Source: Paramoeba atlantica (lineage: Eukaryota > Protista > Discosea). From it: a stretch of 64,000 nt of DNA. The stretch covers positions 1 through 64,000 of the forward strand of contig CDRNVI010000011.1 of NCBI GenBank assembly GCA_977017575.1, written 5' to 3'. Positions 6,803 to 11,395 of this stretch are shown one piece after another. The translations under genes were made by a program, and so were the position numbers. Each line of letters begins with the position of its first letter. The stretch's first letter is position 1. Under the pieces are notes generated by a model. That model was not told where the DNA came from, searched no databases, and saw nothing but the letters and a program-made list of their open reading frames with translations.

Positions 6803-7246
6803 ACTCTGTCACCAGGCAGTCTGACTCGCAAAATCGGACTCCACCGATAAATAGGCAGGATGGCATGTTCATTAACGTCTGAAAATCTGCGGCACCGCAA
6901 TTTAAATCTGCACCCATCCTAACACATCACACAATATATCAACTAATCTTCTCGGTCATCCGCAATCCCGGTCAATGCCTCCTACAAAGATCTCAACGAC
7001 ACCTATAATCAGGCCAGCAATCGTGGAAAATTTGTGCAAATCCAATATATGCATGAACACCCTCACGGGTGGACCTTGTTTATCATACGCTCATTGGCGC
7101 AGAGATATTCCCCTTAATGCGACGGTCGATATCATCGGCACATGATCCGCCCACAACGGATGTCGCACCAAGGGGCATTTGGAACGATAACACGAGGCAG
7201 AGTCACGCACAGCGGTACTCAAGGGGAAGTCTCAAGGGAAAAAAGC

Positions 7247-8387
7247 TCACTCAAAGAGTGAGCCGGGGAGGGGTAATGGGAAGTTCAATAATGGGAGTTC
7301 ATATATTGGATCTGACTCGAGGATTGTCTGTTGAAGAGAATCAGAAGAAGCCGTTATTTCCGCACAATTCTTATCATAAACAATGAAACGGTCTAAGTTA
7401 GTTTGTTTCAATTCTTCATCACTACGACCTCGCTTTTTTTGCATGAGAGGATTAGAGTAGCGGGAAGATTGTGCTTTATGCTCCTTTACTTTACATTCTA
7501 GAATTCGGACTCGTTCCGGTGTAAAAGGAGAATATTTACCTCCCCACTCTTGACGTAAATACACCTCCAGATTATGAATTATCAAACGATATGCAAAACT
7601 ATAGTACAAAAGAGAATCTGAAAATTTAGTCCAATTTCGGAATGCTAACCACCTGCCTGTGCAAGAGCGGCTGAAAATATTCTCGACACGAGCGCGAAAA
7701 TGAGATAAGGACTCATTGTACGCAAGTTTTACATCTGCTTCGCGAACGTAATCAGAAATAGGCTTGTTCGCCTGCAAAGAAGGCCATATATGCGTTTTGG
7801 CGTGTGGAGTTATGATTCTTTGACATTCGTAAAATCCTCCATCTGCCAAAGCTCTAATTCCGCGAGAAGAAACAAAGCGAAGTACACCACAATCCTGAAT
7901 GACAGAATCAGATGAAGCGCCACAATACAAGCCATCCCCAAAAAAACAAACGTACCCTGTCAACGTGCGCCCTACCATAGCTTTGAGTACGTGTTCCCCG
8001 GTACTTTGGGTTATAACACCCAGGTCTTGCATCCACATACATGTAGATGGGAACAGTGTCTATCAACACCTTTACATCCGGCGGCCAGAAACCAAAGGTT
8101 GTATTGTTCGGATGGTTTAACATCTCGTCGCTGGGGTTCAGAAGCCATTTCTCACTCAGCTTTGTGTAAAGTTCATAAAAAAAATTGGGAATTGTATCCT
8201 TACAGGATCGGATCGACCAACCCCTTTTTGACATAAACTTGGCGGCAGAAGACCATCTAGCACCGTTGTAGAACCACGTAAACGAGGCGTCTACTACATC
8301 GCGATCGAAACCGCATTGATAAATTAAATGGTGAAACGAAGCAAGTGTGAGCCCACAGTCAGTCAACTCCCCAAGGTTAGATGACAT
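7247..8387 (-). mobile_element. PIF/Harbinger/ISL2EU-type DDE transposase (DDE_Tnp_4-like), split by a +1 frameshift near 7996-7999; C-terminus runs into the SL/5S array
   Basis: Motifs LIDTVPI...YNPKY(R)/EHVLKAMVG...GASSD, LADGGF, IITPH, YNESLSHFRARVENIF, IIHNL; removing one G from a GGGG run joins the two ORFs. Confidence 0.8.
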
Positions 8388-8601
8388 TAAGACGTACTAG
8401 TCGTATTTGATAAAATTGCTAAATACCATTAAGTAGCAATGTTGCAACGTTAGTAGTTGATCTTTAATAGTTTAATATCATACATGTATATTTGTTGCGT
8501 ATGAGAAATAGAGTAATACAATTAACTTTGACTTGCACGAAATACTTTTACTTGAACTTTTACTTTACATGAGCCACTTTGGCCTGCATACTAAACACTT
8601 C

Positions 8602-9393
8602 TCATTCAATGATTTCAACGAGGTTCGGTTCTCGAGACCGCTTTACCTGAACAACAAAATTTGCCTTGATCGAAGCTACTCCGAGTTCCACAAGTTTTTC
8701 CCAGGTCTCTTCTGGATTCAGATCATCGACGTCGTAGTCAATGGAGCTCAGCTTTCCGAGGGAGCGTTTGCGGGTGCTTGCATGCGGGTTGGCAAAATGA
8801 ACCTTCTCTGTCAAGACCTTATAGAGTCTGTCGCGCTCGTCCTTACGTTGATCAATACTTGAGCGCGTGTAGGAGGCCCACATGTTCCGCAGAAGTATAC
8901 CAGTGGGGCGTACGTCTTTGGGATGTAATGCCACCTTGAAGTATTGAGTTGAAAGAAGACGTGCGGAGCGCATAAATTTTTCGTACTCGTCGTTTCGAGA
9001 GCAGGCATTTATTTGAACAAGAATTTGCACAATGTCTTTGGCGACAAGACGCCTCCCTAGGAAAGTGTGCTTAACGTACAAGCAACATACGTATTGCGCT
9101 TTGGCTGGATCCGTCCCACAGGAAACAAGTTTTTCTTTCTGTGATCGTGACATTTGCTCGAGGTCTTTCGACGAGGAGCAGCGAGGACATATTTTGGCCA
9201 GAATCGGCACGTTTGCATAATCGCAGTTGGCACATTGCTCTACTTCCACACTTGATTCAGTGTTACTCTGAATCGGTGTTTCGCAATACAAGCACCGTCG
9301 TGGAGAACATAGCGTGAACGGTGTAACCTTTTCACATTGAACGCAGAACAGAGCAGGGATAACGTCACCTCCAGCCCGAACGCTTTCAGCCAT
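8602..9393 (-). CDS. Hypothetical protein with N-terminal multiple zinc ribbons (263 aa)
   Basis: CVQC, CLYC, CANC, CPRC pairs; clean ATG-to-stop ORF. Confidence 0.65.
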   Translation of the reverse strand: MAESVRAGGDVIPALFCVQCEKVTPFTLCSPRRCLYCETPIQSNTESSVEVEQCANCDYANVPILAKICPRCSSSKDLEQMSRSQKEKLVSCGTDPAKAQYVCCLYVKHTFLGRRLVAKDIVQILVQINACSRNDEYEKFMRSARLLSTQYFKVALHPKDVRPTGILLRNMWASYTRSSIDQRKDERDRLYKVLTEKVHFANPHASTRKRSLGKLSSIDYDVDDLNPEETWEKLVELGVASIKANFVVQVKRSREPNLVEIIE

Positions 9394-9517
9394 GTCAATG
9401 TTTTGAAGAAATGAAACCTACTACCCTCATTTTTAAAATCTCAGTTTAAAACGCGCTTATAAACGAAGAAGCCATTCATACTCAGTAGAAACAATTTACA
9501 AACACCAATAAAAAAAA

Positions 9518-9803
9518 TCCAAATCATTCCGGATTGCTCCGGATGGTCACTGGCAAGCCAGACCCTTCACAGACAGATTTGGAAGTTCCGAGGCCGCTCT
9601 ACCAGTTTCCGCTTGTCCAAGGCGGCACCAACGTGCTGTTACCAACACACTGCGTCGACGAACTGTACGTCAACACGGCTTACCCAAGAGGTGTAAGCCG
9701 GGTAAGGGAGCTGGTTCCCCGAGGGGAGGGTCCGGGACGGTCCTCCGAGTACTGGGCCTAGTCGGTTATCAGCCCAGCCTCTTAGAGTGAGGCCGCCGGG
9801 AAT
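9518..9803 (-). ncRNA. Unidentified highly structured RNA (about 280 nt), probably Pol III
   Basis: Minus strand: closing helix ATTCCCGG/CCGGAAT, about 9 hairpins including GUAA, GCAA and CUUG tetraloops, then T8 (A-run 9510-9517 on +). Confidence 0.65.
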
Positions 9804-9805
9804 AT

Positions 9806-9884
9806 TGCGATGAGCGGGTTTGAACTCGCCGTCTGAGCACCATGTGCTTCAAACTTTGAATTCTTGCCACTCCGCCACCTCCGC
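9806..9884 (-). promoter_or_regulatory. Degenerate class II (Leu/Ser-like) tRNA-like leader with consensus A and B boxes
   Basis: A box TGGCGGAGTGG, variable-arm hairpin GCAC-ATG-GTGC, B box GAGTTCAAACC, imperfect acceptor stem GCGGAGG/CTCATCGC; no 7-nt anticodon loop. Confidence 0.65.
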
Positions 9885-9913
9885 TCTAGAGCGGAGGTGG
9901 CGGAGTGGCAAGA
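9862..9913. repeat. Perfect 52-bp palindrome with no spacer
   Basis: TCTTGCCACTCCGCCACCTCCGCTCT|AGAGCGGAGGTGGCGGAGTGGCAAGA. Confidence 0.95.
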
Positions 9914-10072
9914 CAAACACCAATGCAATAGCTTCATGTTACATTCTATATTTTGTTTTCTAAAGATCTACTTAGGAGGATGAAGATTCCTAAAACTAGA
10001 CTCGCCGTGCCATCCTGTGCCATTTCGTGCCATCCTGTGCCATCCACAGAGGGTAAACTTGCACAGTGTCCA

Positions 10073-10209
10073 ATGAGTCGAGAAAAACCAGTTTAAACAG
10101 CCGGAAACGCACCTATGTAAAATTCTCTACACGTTCAAAAAAAAGATGATAAAAAACAGAACAGTTTTTCAAATTTCGAGGGGGGGACTTATAGCTGATT
10201 GCTAGTGTA
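10073..10209. mobile_element. Solo right end of the MITE family seen at 39278-40026
   Basis: High identity to about 39890-40028, ending GGGGGGGACTTATAGCTGATTGCTAGTG|TA. Confidence 0.8.
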
Positions 10210-10939
10210 TTGTCGTAGTATACTATAATGAGACCTGTGATTCTTCCATTGGTATCCTTCAAATGCATTATATTGGGATCATCCGGTTGCGTTCGTTTTT
10301 TCCCCTAGGCTTAACCTGTCTACATCCCGTTTTAAATAAACGACACTCCAACACATGCGGTGTGCAATTGAAGCAGACCAAGAATGTCCCATCGGCAAAA
10401 CGGTTGGTACCTAGGCTGAATTCTCCAACCACAGATTCATAGTTCTAGAAAAAGCATCAAAGATGGGCAACTGGTAAAACCGGTGCCTGAGATCTGCCGT
10501 GATGTAGCACGCTAGACCTAGTATTTCCCTATGAATTTGTTCCTTCGTGGGTAATGCAATATCTGGAGGTCTCCGTGCAAGCACACTGACATCTTTTGCA
10601 TTCATAATCAAGCGAGAATGGGTTTTCGGTTTTCAAACTGAAAAATCGTGTTCAGTCAGTCGGAAGAGTTGGTACAAAAATATTCCCTTTTCACCTTGGT
10701 ATTCTACAAATGCTGTTTCAGCTGGTTATATCCTTGCTTGTTGCTCTTCGAATAATCTTCCACCGCTCGTGATTGAGCACATCCGTTGTGCCCACTCCGC
10801 TTCTCTTCTGTATTTGTTGCGGCCCGTTTTGAGGTACCACTTTTTCTCTAAAAATCTAATGCGAATCCTGAGAGCTGTCCATCAGAATAGAAGGACGAAA
10901 CATCGAGGGGGCGAGAGCCTTGATGATTGCGATCAATTC

Positions 10940-11395
10940 CACGGGCGAACTGCTTTCCAGATCGTTCGTTGATGGCTGAAGATGTCGCATCAAGCGCAGT
11001 TCGCGTGATGTGGGTGAAAACTGTTCGCTTAAAGTAGAAATCACGGACAAGACCATTGAAATGTTCAACGCCGCCTTTCTCCCAATTTGCGTAGGGCTTG
11101 CAAAAGAATGATTGACAGCCCAACGAAGGGGCTGTCTTCACTAGCTCGTGTTTCGCGAACTCGGTTCCATTGTCGTACGTGATGCTGAAAGCTTGGAACC
11201 GTTGCAGAGCACAAGTGACCTCCTCGACTACAATTGCCAATTTCTTGTCCCCCAACTTCCGAAGAATTACACAGCGGCTTTTTTTTCCTCCACTGAACTG
11301 AGCAAATAGCCGCTATGTTGTGCTCCTCCATTCAAGTCGCGCTCCCAATCTCCATGCCTGGTGAGAGTGTTGACGAAATCTGGACGCTCTCTTAT
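10940..11395 (-). pseudogene. IS30-family transposase relic (catalytic DDE core), frameshifted
   Basis: IRERPDFVNTLTRHGDWERDL..GYLLSSVE / KSRCVILRKLGDK..SITYDNGTEFAKHE..FFCKPYANWEKGGVEHFNGLVRDFY..INER; frameshift at the T8 run 11279-11286. Confidence 0.85.

Follow-up and report, generated by a model that had tools for sequence, protein, structure and literature searches.

The window examined here, the 64,000 nucleotides (nt) at positions 1 to 64,000 of contig CDRNVI010000011.1 (assembly GCA_977017575.1, deposited as Paramoeba atlantica), carries a palindrome, a transfer RNA (tRNA)-like leader, a structured RNA, a zinc-ribbon open reading frame (ORF) and a DDE transposase in a row within 2.6 kb. 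A preliminary description suggested that these five parts might together make up a single composite transposon of the Harbinger type, with an RNA polymerase III (Pol III) non-coding RNA of its own. We confirmed all five on the minus strand, co-oriented and placed as described, in a block that runs opposite to the long ORFs from 11.6 kb on and sits between an array of 5S ribosomal RNA (rRNA) and spliced-leader genes and a transposon relic. The parts belong to two independent units, and the RNA-associated composite transposon is refuted. Leader, RNA and half of the palindrome form one short interspersed nuclear element (SINE), and the zinc-ribbon ORF (ORF1) and the transposase belong to a PIF/Harbinger-type element. 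We are highly confident that these are two nested mobile elements, the SINE lying inside a dead PIF/Harbinger copy. The SINE RNA is neither a cofactor nor a cargo of the transposon, and the parts were found to occur independently.

A 12-base-pair (bp) target-site duplication, ATTGGTGTTTGT, borders the insertion on both sides (Table 1). Four paralogous Harbinger copies (two on C30, the others on C32 and C185) retain the empty site, and in each of them ATTGGTGTTTGT occurs once, between the equivalents of window positions 9913-9993 and 9440-9509. We propose that a reverse transcriptase (RT) of the long interspersed nuclear element (LINE) type would have copied the SINE into the 5′ untranslated region of the Harbinger copy, making the 12-bp duplication. 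Shared boundaries, whether terminal inverted repeats (TIRs) or target duplications, had been proposed as a check on the composite; ORF1 and the DDE transposase do lie inside one element, and the SINE has a duplication of its own.

Copy numbers across the genome also separate the two units. We searched the whole assembly (45.7 Mb in 248 contigs, in which the window is C11:1-64000) and found that positions 9510-9884 are the sole highly repeated stretch of window 7000-10300, with more than 50 copies among the matches listed, 94-98% identical to the window copy. A 31-nt pattern from the SINE head occurs at 260 sites on many contigs with at most 3 mismatches, against none for the reversed control. 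These head sites outnumber the loci at which ORF1-like and transposase-like frames are paired roughly ninefold, and the SINE is absent from all eight copies of a young Harbinger subfamily. Co-occurrence of the parts in the genome was borne out for ORF1 with the transposase and not for the transposon with the RNA unit, which is missing from these eight copies and from the four paralogues.

Table 1. Features of the SINE, the Harbinger copy and the adjoining relic, by position in the window
Feature	Positions	Strand	Remarks
Probable 3-bp target duplication, ATT	10072-10074	minus	ATT or AAT precedes the same terminus in copies with different flanks
Harbinger 5′ terminus, GGACACTGTGCAAG	10058-10071	minus	Homology with L047, L048, L049 and L038 starts here, upstream flanks differ; resembles GGACCC
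Subterminal 10-bp repeats, ATGGCAC-type	10006-10045	minus	Tandem Repeats Finder, period 10, 3.9 copies
12-bp target-site duplication ATTGGTGTTTGT, upstream copy	9913-9924	minus	Single copy in the four paralogues, joining both flanks
SINE insertion	9510-9912	minus	Palindrome arm, tRNA-like leader, structured RNA and T8 are a single retroposed insertion
Left palindrome arm	9888-9912	minus	Exact inverted duplicate of the insertion's first 25 nt; absent from empty sites
SINE head: AGA leader and 79-nt tRNA-like part (9806-9884)	9806-9887	minus	Start common to 32 aligned copies
A box	9867-9877	minus	11/11 against TRGCNNAGTGG; element positions 8-18
B box	9816-9826	minus	9/11 against GGTTCGANNCC; element positions 59-69
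SINE body (the structured RNA)	9521-9805	minus	Part of the same ~372-nt repeat unit
SINE tail, GGA and T8 (T8 at 9510-9517)	9510-9520	minus	T5-T18 or (GGATTT)n variants in other copies
12-bp target-site duplication ATTGGTGTTTGT, downstream copy	9498-9509	minus	Other side of insertion 9510-9912
ORF1, intact, 263 amino acids (aa): double zinc ribbon and helical domain	8602-9393	minus	8 conserved Cys in four CxxC pairs
Transposase, N-terminal part	7908-8387	minus	38% identity to residues 45-166 of the L051 393-aa transposase; first catalytic D in IDTVP
Transposase, C-terminal part, other frame	7247-8038	minus	48% identity to L051 residues 169-378; motifs ALADGGFY, RARVENIF
Putative 3′ terminus, ...CAGATCC then AAT; uncertain	7305-7314 (possible end 7308)	minus	Imperfect inverted match to 5′ terminus, by eye
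rve-like transposon relic	10848-11255	minus	135-aa frame, weak integrase-core (rve) match, E = 0.0016; adjoins the Harbinger copy

The SINE and its copies

We aligned 33 copies of the SINE with their flanks and found both ends to be sharp and common to all. Copies usually begin with AGA or AGG, then GCGGAGGTGGCGGAGTGG; at the 3′ end, ...CCGGAATGATTTGGA leads into T5-T18 or variants of (GGATTT)n. The consensus is 372 nt plus the tail, and the divergence of the copies is low (0.3-4.3%, mean 1.5%, n = 33). The A box is intact in 30 of the 33 copies and the B box in 31; together they would provide the SINE with a Pol III promoter.

How did the SINE spread? Target duplications of 8-13 bp were found in the 45-nt flanks of 20 of the 33 copies. 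Copies truncated at the 5′ end lack the head but still carry the tail, and one such copy is flanked by a target duplication of its own. The variable duplications and the 5′ truncations together argue for retroposition by target-primed reverse transcription and not for cut-and-paste transposition. A poly(A) run replaces the T or (GGATTT)n tail in one copy that has a 12-bp target duplication (L004, C32:4618-4984), which points to an additional route of retroposition that depends on poly(A).

The stretch that ends in the T8 run is GC-rich, its RNA fold over 9505-9875 is more stable than that of shuffled sequence (z = -3.76), and no Rfam family matched the SINE body or RNA, either at the gathering cut-off or at E ≤ 10. 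A short motif resembling an Alu domain made 7SL, the signal recognition particle (SRP) RNA, a candidate identity. It was rejected: no SRP model matched, and three true 7SL genes (84-88 bits) lie elsewhere, on other contigs. An exact 31-mer of the SINE had zero matches in the metagenome contigs scanned. SINE copies cluster in transposon-rich regions, for example at C30:610-620 kb beside Harbinger fragments, and this clustering is ordinary nesting.

What, then, is the palindrome? It was reported at 9862-9913 as a perfect palindrome with overlapping 27-nt arms; by hand count it is 25 + 25 nt, with its centre between 9888 and 9887. Among the matches listed, the full palindrome was seen at the window locus and at its C24 duplicate only. 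Because the left arm lies inside the 12-bp duplication, the palindrome was made during a single SINE insertion, and it is neither a transposon end nor a regulatory hairpin. At the 5′ end of the insertion, the nascent reverse transcript would have folded back and copied itself for 25 nt. Such fold-back self-copying is probably the simplest explanation of the palindrome in the window.

Other copies are rearranged at the 5′ end as well. In the chimera L009 (C48:253323-256703, locus positions 1501-2060), partial repeats of the 5S 5′ end are followed by a full 120-nt 5S rRNA sequence and then by the SINE, and a single 9-bp duplication, AAGGCGACC, encloses the whole. Two to four tandem partial repeats of the SINE's first 17-25 nt stand directly upstream of full copies in L024, L026, L028, L029, L004 and L005. 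The 5S chimera and the tandem 5′ repeats are the pattern expected of template switching, and we infer that the responsible RT is error-prone at RNA 5′ ends. The SINE copies in L019, L020 and L022 also abut the exact 3′ end of 5S sequence.

The Harbinger family and its ORF1

The window copy is an old, dead PIF/Harbinger-type element that extends from 10071 to about 7308 on the minus strand, with an open ORF1 and a broken DDE transposase. The transposase matches the Pfam family DDE_Tnp_4 at 26.9 bits (cut-off 24.8; E = 4.3e-6 in the C-terminal part); one frameshift, which falls between 7993 and 8001, separates its two parts. Homology to other copies switches partner at 7281/7280, and one C30 paralogue is a deletion derivative without ORF1. 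The subterminal repeats are candidate binding sites for an element protein. Another Harbinger-like 5′ terminus, reading ATT and then GGATTTGCACAAAT, runs toward the spliced-leader array and has subterminal motifs of the GGATGG type (6804-7046 and 7037-7051, minus strand). It resembles the truncated remains of a related element, and an inverted repeat of 15 nt pairs 7037-7051 with 7300-7314.

Protein searches of the assembly returned 72 matches for ORF1 and 83 for the transposase. Comparing their coordinates by hand, we found an ORF1-like frame followed by a transposase-like frame on the same strand, 0.5-2.8 kb apart, at about 30 loci, a number that includes some near-identical duplicates. Eight copies, 97.7-99.7% identical over 2.72 kb, make up the young subfamily, whose ORFs are intact (in L051, an ORF1 of 298 aa and a transposase of 393 aa). 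The intact-copy transposase scores 36.6 bits against DDE_Tnp_4, above the same cut-off of 24.8. The termini are GGACCC...GGGTCC, and GGCCAC repeats lie at both ends. The same triplet (AGT, AAT or AGA; ANT/AGA) stands at both ends in 8/8 young copies, in the context C/NNN/G. These matching triplets are the 3-bp duplication that defines PIF/Harbinger elements, though not the usual TWA. The subfamily looks recently mobile. If it works as other PIF/Harbinger elements do, ORF1 would attach to the subterminal repeats and bring in the transposase, which would then cut and paste the element with a 3-bp duplication.

Several further observations concern this family. Two young copies, L057 (C37, 3990-4449) and L058 (C3, 3765-4224), contain an insertion of about 455 bp with inverted termini of its own (CCCCCCACAGCGAA...), which is likely to be a miniature DNA transposon from a different family. 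The second catalytic position is E in the young subfamily (ALAEGGFY, L051:3979-5157) and D in the window copy (ALADGGFY, 7250-8038). At C21:765015-781250 there is a tandem array with a period of 1995 bp, in which at least five units each carry an open 197-aa ORF1-like frame; by coordinates only, no transposase match is listed nearby. This array may be an amplified or domesticated helper gene. The transposase had no sequence match in the PDB, and a word search with it gave self hits only.

The multi-zinc-ribbon accessory ORF that the preliminary description attributed to a Harbinger-type element is supported by the paired loci and by the intact copies with TIRs and 3-bp duplications. What kind of protein is it? 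A helical region with a conserved LRNxW motif follows the CxxC pairs. Intact ORF1 had no Pfam match over the whole protein, and the window ORF1 gave no more than a weak match to a zinc ribbon, below threshold (zf-ChsH2, E = 0.00097). Among 27 members of the ORF1 family, weak matches to DZR were obtained in 5 and to DZR_2 in 9, and a Pfam Myb family was found in none. A profile of ORF1 searched against PDB sequences gave only a weak RING-finger match (E = 0.01). A full HMMER search of 1.84 billion representatives returned 25 relatives, and the six that we checked are unnamed ENA/Logan fragments. A word search with ORF1 yielded only copies from what is apparently the same organism, and a search of the protein atlas had no hits. 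We modeled ORF1 with AlphaFold2 from the relatives; the mean predicted local distance difference test (pLDDT) score is 74.7, and blocks within residues 1-170 average 75-98. The model had no Foldseek match at E ≤ 0.001, and Foldseek with VIA-align turned up no convincing structural match (best Z 5.7). We therefore describe ORF1 as a protein in which no Myb, SANT or trihelix domain was detected; it may still contain a very divergent three-helix domain.

Alternative readings

Could the RNA nevertheless be a functional partner of the transposon? All parts are co-oriented within 2.6 kb, and at two other places, C21:577654 and C32:195319, a SINE head is likewise co-oriented with an ORF1-like frame, about 130 bp downstream of it by coordinates alone. 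The SINE has the same position in these two loci relative to each other and a different one from that in the window; they are either duplicated loci or a SINE-bearing Harbinger copy that moved. A composite Harbinger-type transposon with its own Pol III RNA has to contend not only with this difference in position, but also with the 12-bp duplication and four empty sites of the RNA part, with a count of 260 head sites for about 30 loci of the paired transposon genes and none in the eight intact young copies, and with variable 8-13 bp duplications and 5′ truncations that speak for retroposition, not cut-and-paste. We consider such a partnership extremely improbable. A different proposal takes the ~372-nt unit to be the gene of a functional Pol III RNA of the cell, and most copies to be its retropseudogenes, not members of a selfish SINE family. 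Its stable fold, its A and B boxes with a terminator, and the youth and uniformity of the copies would all suit such a gene. However, the unit matches no Rfam family, the true 7SL genes are elsewhere, and no syntenic single-copy master gene was identified; moreover, 30-31 of 33 copies preserve the boxes, which would be expected if many copies are competent for transcription. This makes a cellular gene very unlikely in our judgment. For the palindrome, we also weighed a head-to-head junction with a second, nearly wholly deleted SINE, and a functional transposon hairpin. Inverted SINE pairs do exist elsewhere, for example at C3:779440-780492, but here the inverted 25 nt lie within one 12-bp duplication, neither a spacer nor a further duplication is present, and among the matches listed no other copy save the C24 duplicate has the full palindrome. 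Either origin is unlikely.

Several points weigh against our own reading of a SINE nested in a Harbinger copy, and the co-oriented SINE heads on C21 and C32 are among them. The figure of 260 may overcount SINE copies per haploid genome because the assembly appears to hold near-identical duplicate loci, such as C24 and the window. Pol III transcription of the SINE is a prediction from sequence motifs. Neither ARAGORN, run on the window, nor Rfam at E ≤ 10 called a tRNA in the head, and the label "tRNA-like" therefore refers to the promoter boxes and a residual T arm; in a cloverleaf drawn by eye, the T arm and a partial acceptor stem remain and nothing more. A T-rich tail such as this one is uncommon among SINEs. 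The tail-only matches that we fetched proved to be 5′-truncated SINEs with unrelated DNA upstream and shared no LINE sequence; the LINE that stands beside one SINE copy does not have a similar 3′ end, and no partner LINE was found among the loci examined. As for the transposon, no clean inverted copy of its 5′ terminus is present anywhere in the window, so its 3′ end, unlike the clear 5′ end, is insecure, and ATT and AAT at the two ends of the window copy make an imperfect duplication.

Two further readings may hold. The enzyme that copies the SINE may start on a Pol III-type, U-rich 3′ end and not on poly(A), and often switch template at RNA 5′ ends; and a double-zinc-ribbon protein may have taken over the end-binding role of a Myb-like ORF1. 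We offer this pair tentatively, giving it a little less than an even chance. Such an enzyme would account for the chimera of 5S and SINE as well as for the tandem 5′ repeats and the inverted duplication of 25 nt. If this is true, the SINE family would be a natural record of RT behavior in a group from which we found no SINE described.

Relation to known elements and genomic setting

Both elements fall within known kinds, as variants or as members, and come from a lineage that has been little studied. Like tRNA-derived SINEs, the SINE is short and non-coding, and its A and B boxes are placed as in a tRNA. It also shares with them young, dispersed copies in the hundreds, target duplications of variable length (8-13 bp) and truncation at the 5′ end. 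It differs from them in its kinetoplastid host, in a head too decayed for ARAGORN or Rfam, and in a T(n) or (GGATTT)n tail instead of poly(A). T-rich 3′ ends are known from the plant SINEs Au SINE and p-SINE1. In mammals, template switching by LINE RTs has joined U6 or 5S to L1 or Alu; twin priming gives rise to 5′ inversions of L1. L009 resembles such chimeric retrocopies in that full-length 5S is joined to the 5′ end of a retroposon, with one duplication around both and with rearrangements at the 5′ end only. Unlike an L1 5′ inversion, which inverts an internal segment, the window palindrome is an inverted duplication of the first 25 nt. The SINE copies appear to record template switching at RNA 5′ ends in three forms: the 5S chimera, the tandem 5′ repeats and the inverted 5′ duplication.

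The transposon shares with PIF, Pong and Harbinger3_DR a DDE_Tnp_4 transposase, a separate upstream ORF1, short TIRs, a 3-bp duplication and subterminal repeats. It departs from them in its ORF1, which is a double zinc ribbon with a helical region and has no detectable Myb, SANT or trihelix domain, in triplets of ANT or AGA within C/NNN/G in place of TWA, and in the E of ALAEGGFY in the young subfamily. The likeness to RNA-linked transposons (IS200/IS605 with TnpB omega RNA, IS110 with bridge RNA, and CRISPR-associated elements) is superficial and limited to the layout, a structured RNA beside a transposase gene. Their RNA is obligatory and always linked, whereas here it is an independent retroposon, at this position in 1 of about 30 loci. 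The lead toward an RNA-carrying class of transposon can be closed.

What do these elements add to kinetoplastid genomics? A paper from 2021 reported Merlin as the first DNA transposon in kinetoplastids, where only retrotransposons had been known before, and its kinetoplastid copies are degenerate (PMC8101967). According to a 2025 survey, the confirmed clades of trypanosomatids are limited to the retrotransposons INGI, CRE, VIPER and TATE, and DNA transposons were not found in these organisms (PMC12278014). In our literature search, we found neither a Pol III-type SINE nor a PIF/Harbinger element described in kinetoplastids. The present genome offers an apparently recently mobile Harbinger family with a non-Myb helper and a young, putatively Pol III-type SINE. 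Both families can also serve as annotation markers, and SINE bodies could otherwise pass for new structured RNA genes.

The kinetoplastid assignment is read from the sequence of the array that flanks the Harbinger/SINE block on one side. The window has three 5S rRNA genes (99 bits each), and the 297-bp tandem units between them carry a spliced-leader exon with the kinetoplastid-type end ...CAGTTTCTGTAC...TTG/GTATGAGAAGC. On the other side of the block lies the rve-like relic, and the long ORFs from 11.6 kb onward are all on the plus strand, in the manner of a polycistronic unit. A 3.3-kb segment at C24:263590-266890 is 100% identical to window 7000-10300, SINE and palindrome included. Near-identical pairs of loci are numerous elsewhere too and may represent the two haplotypes or segments that were recently duplicated.

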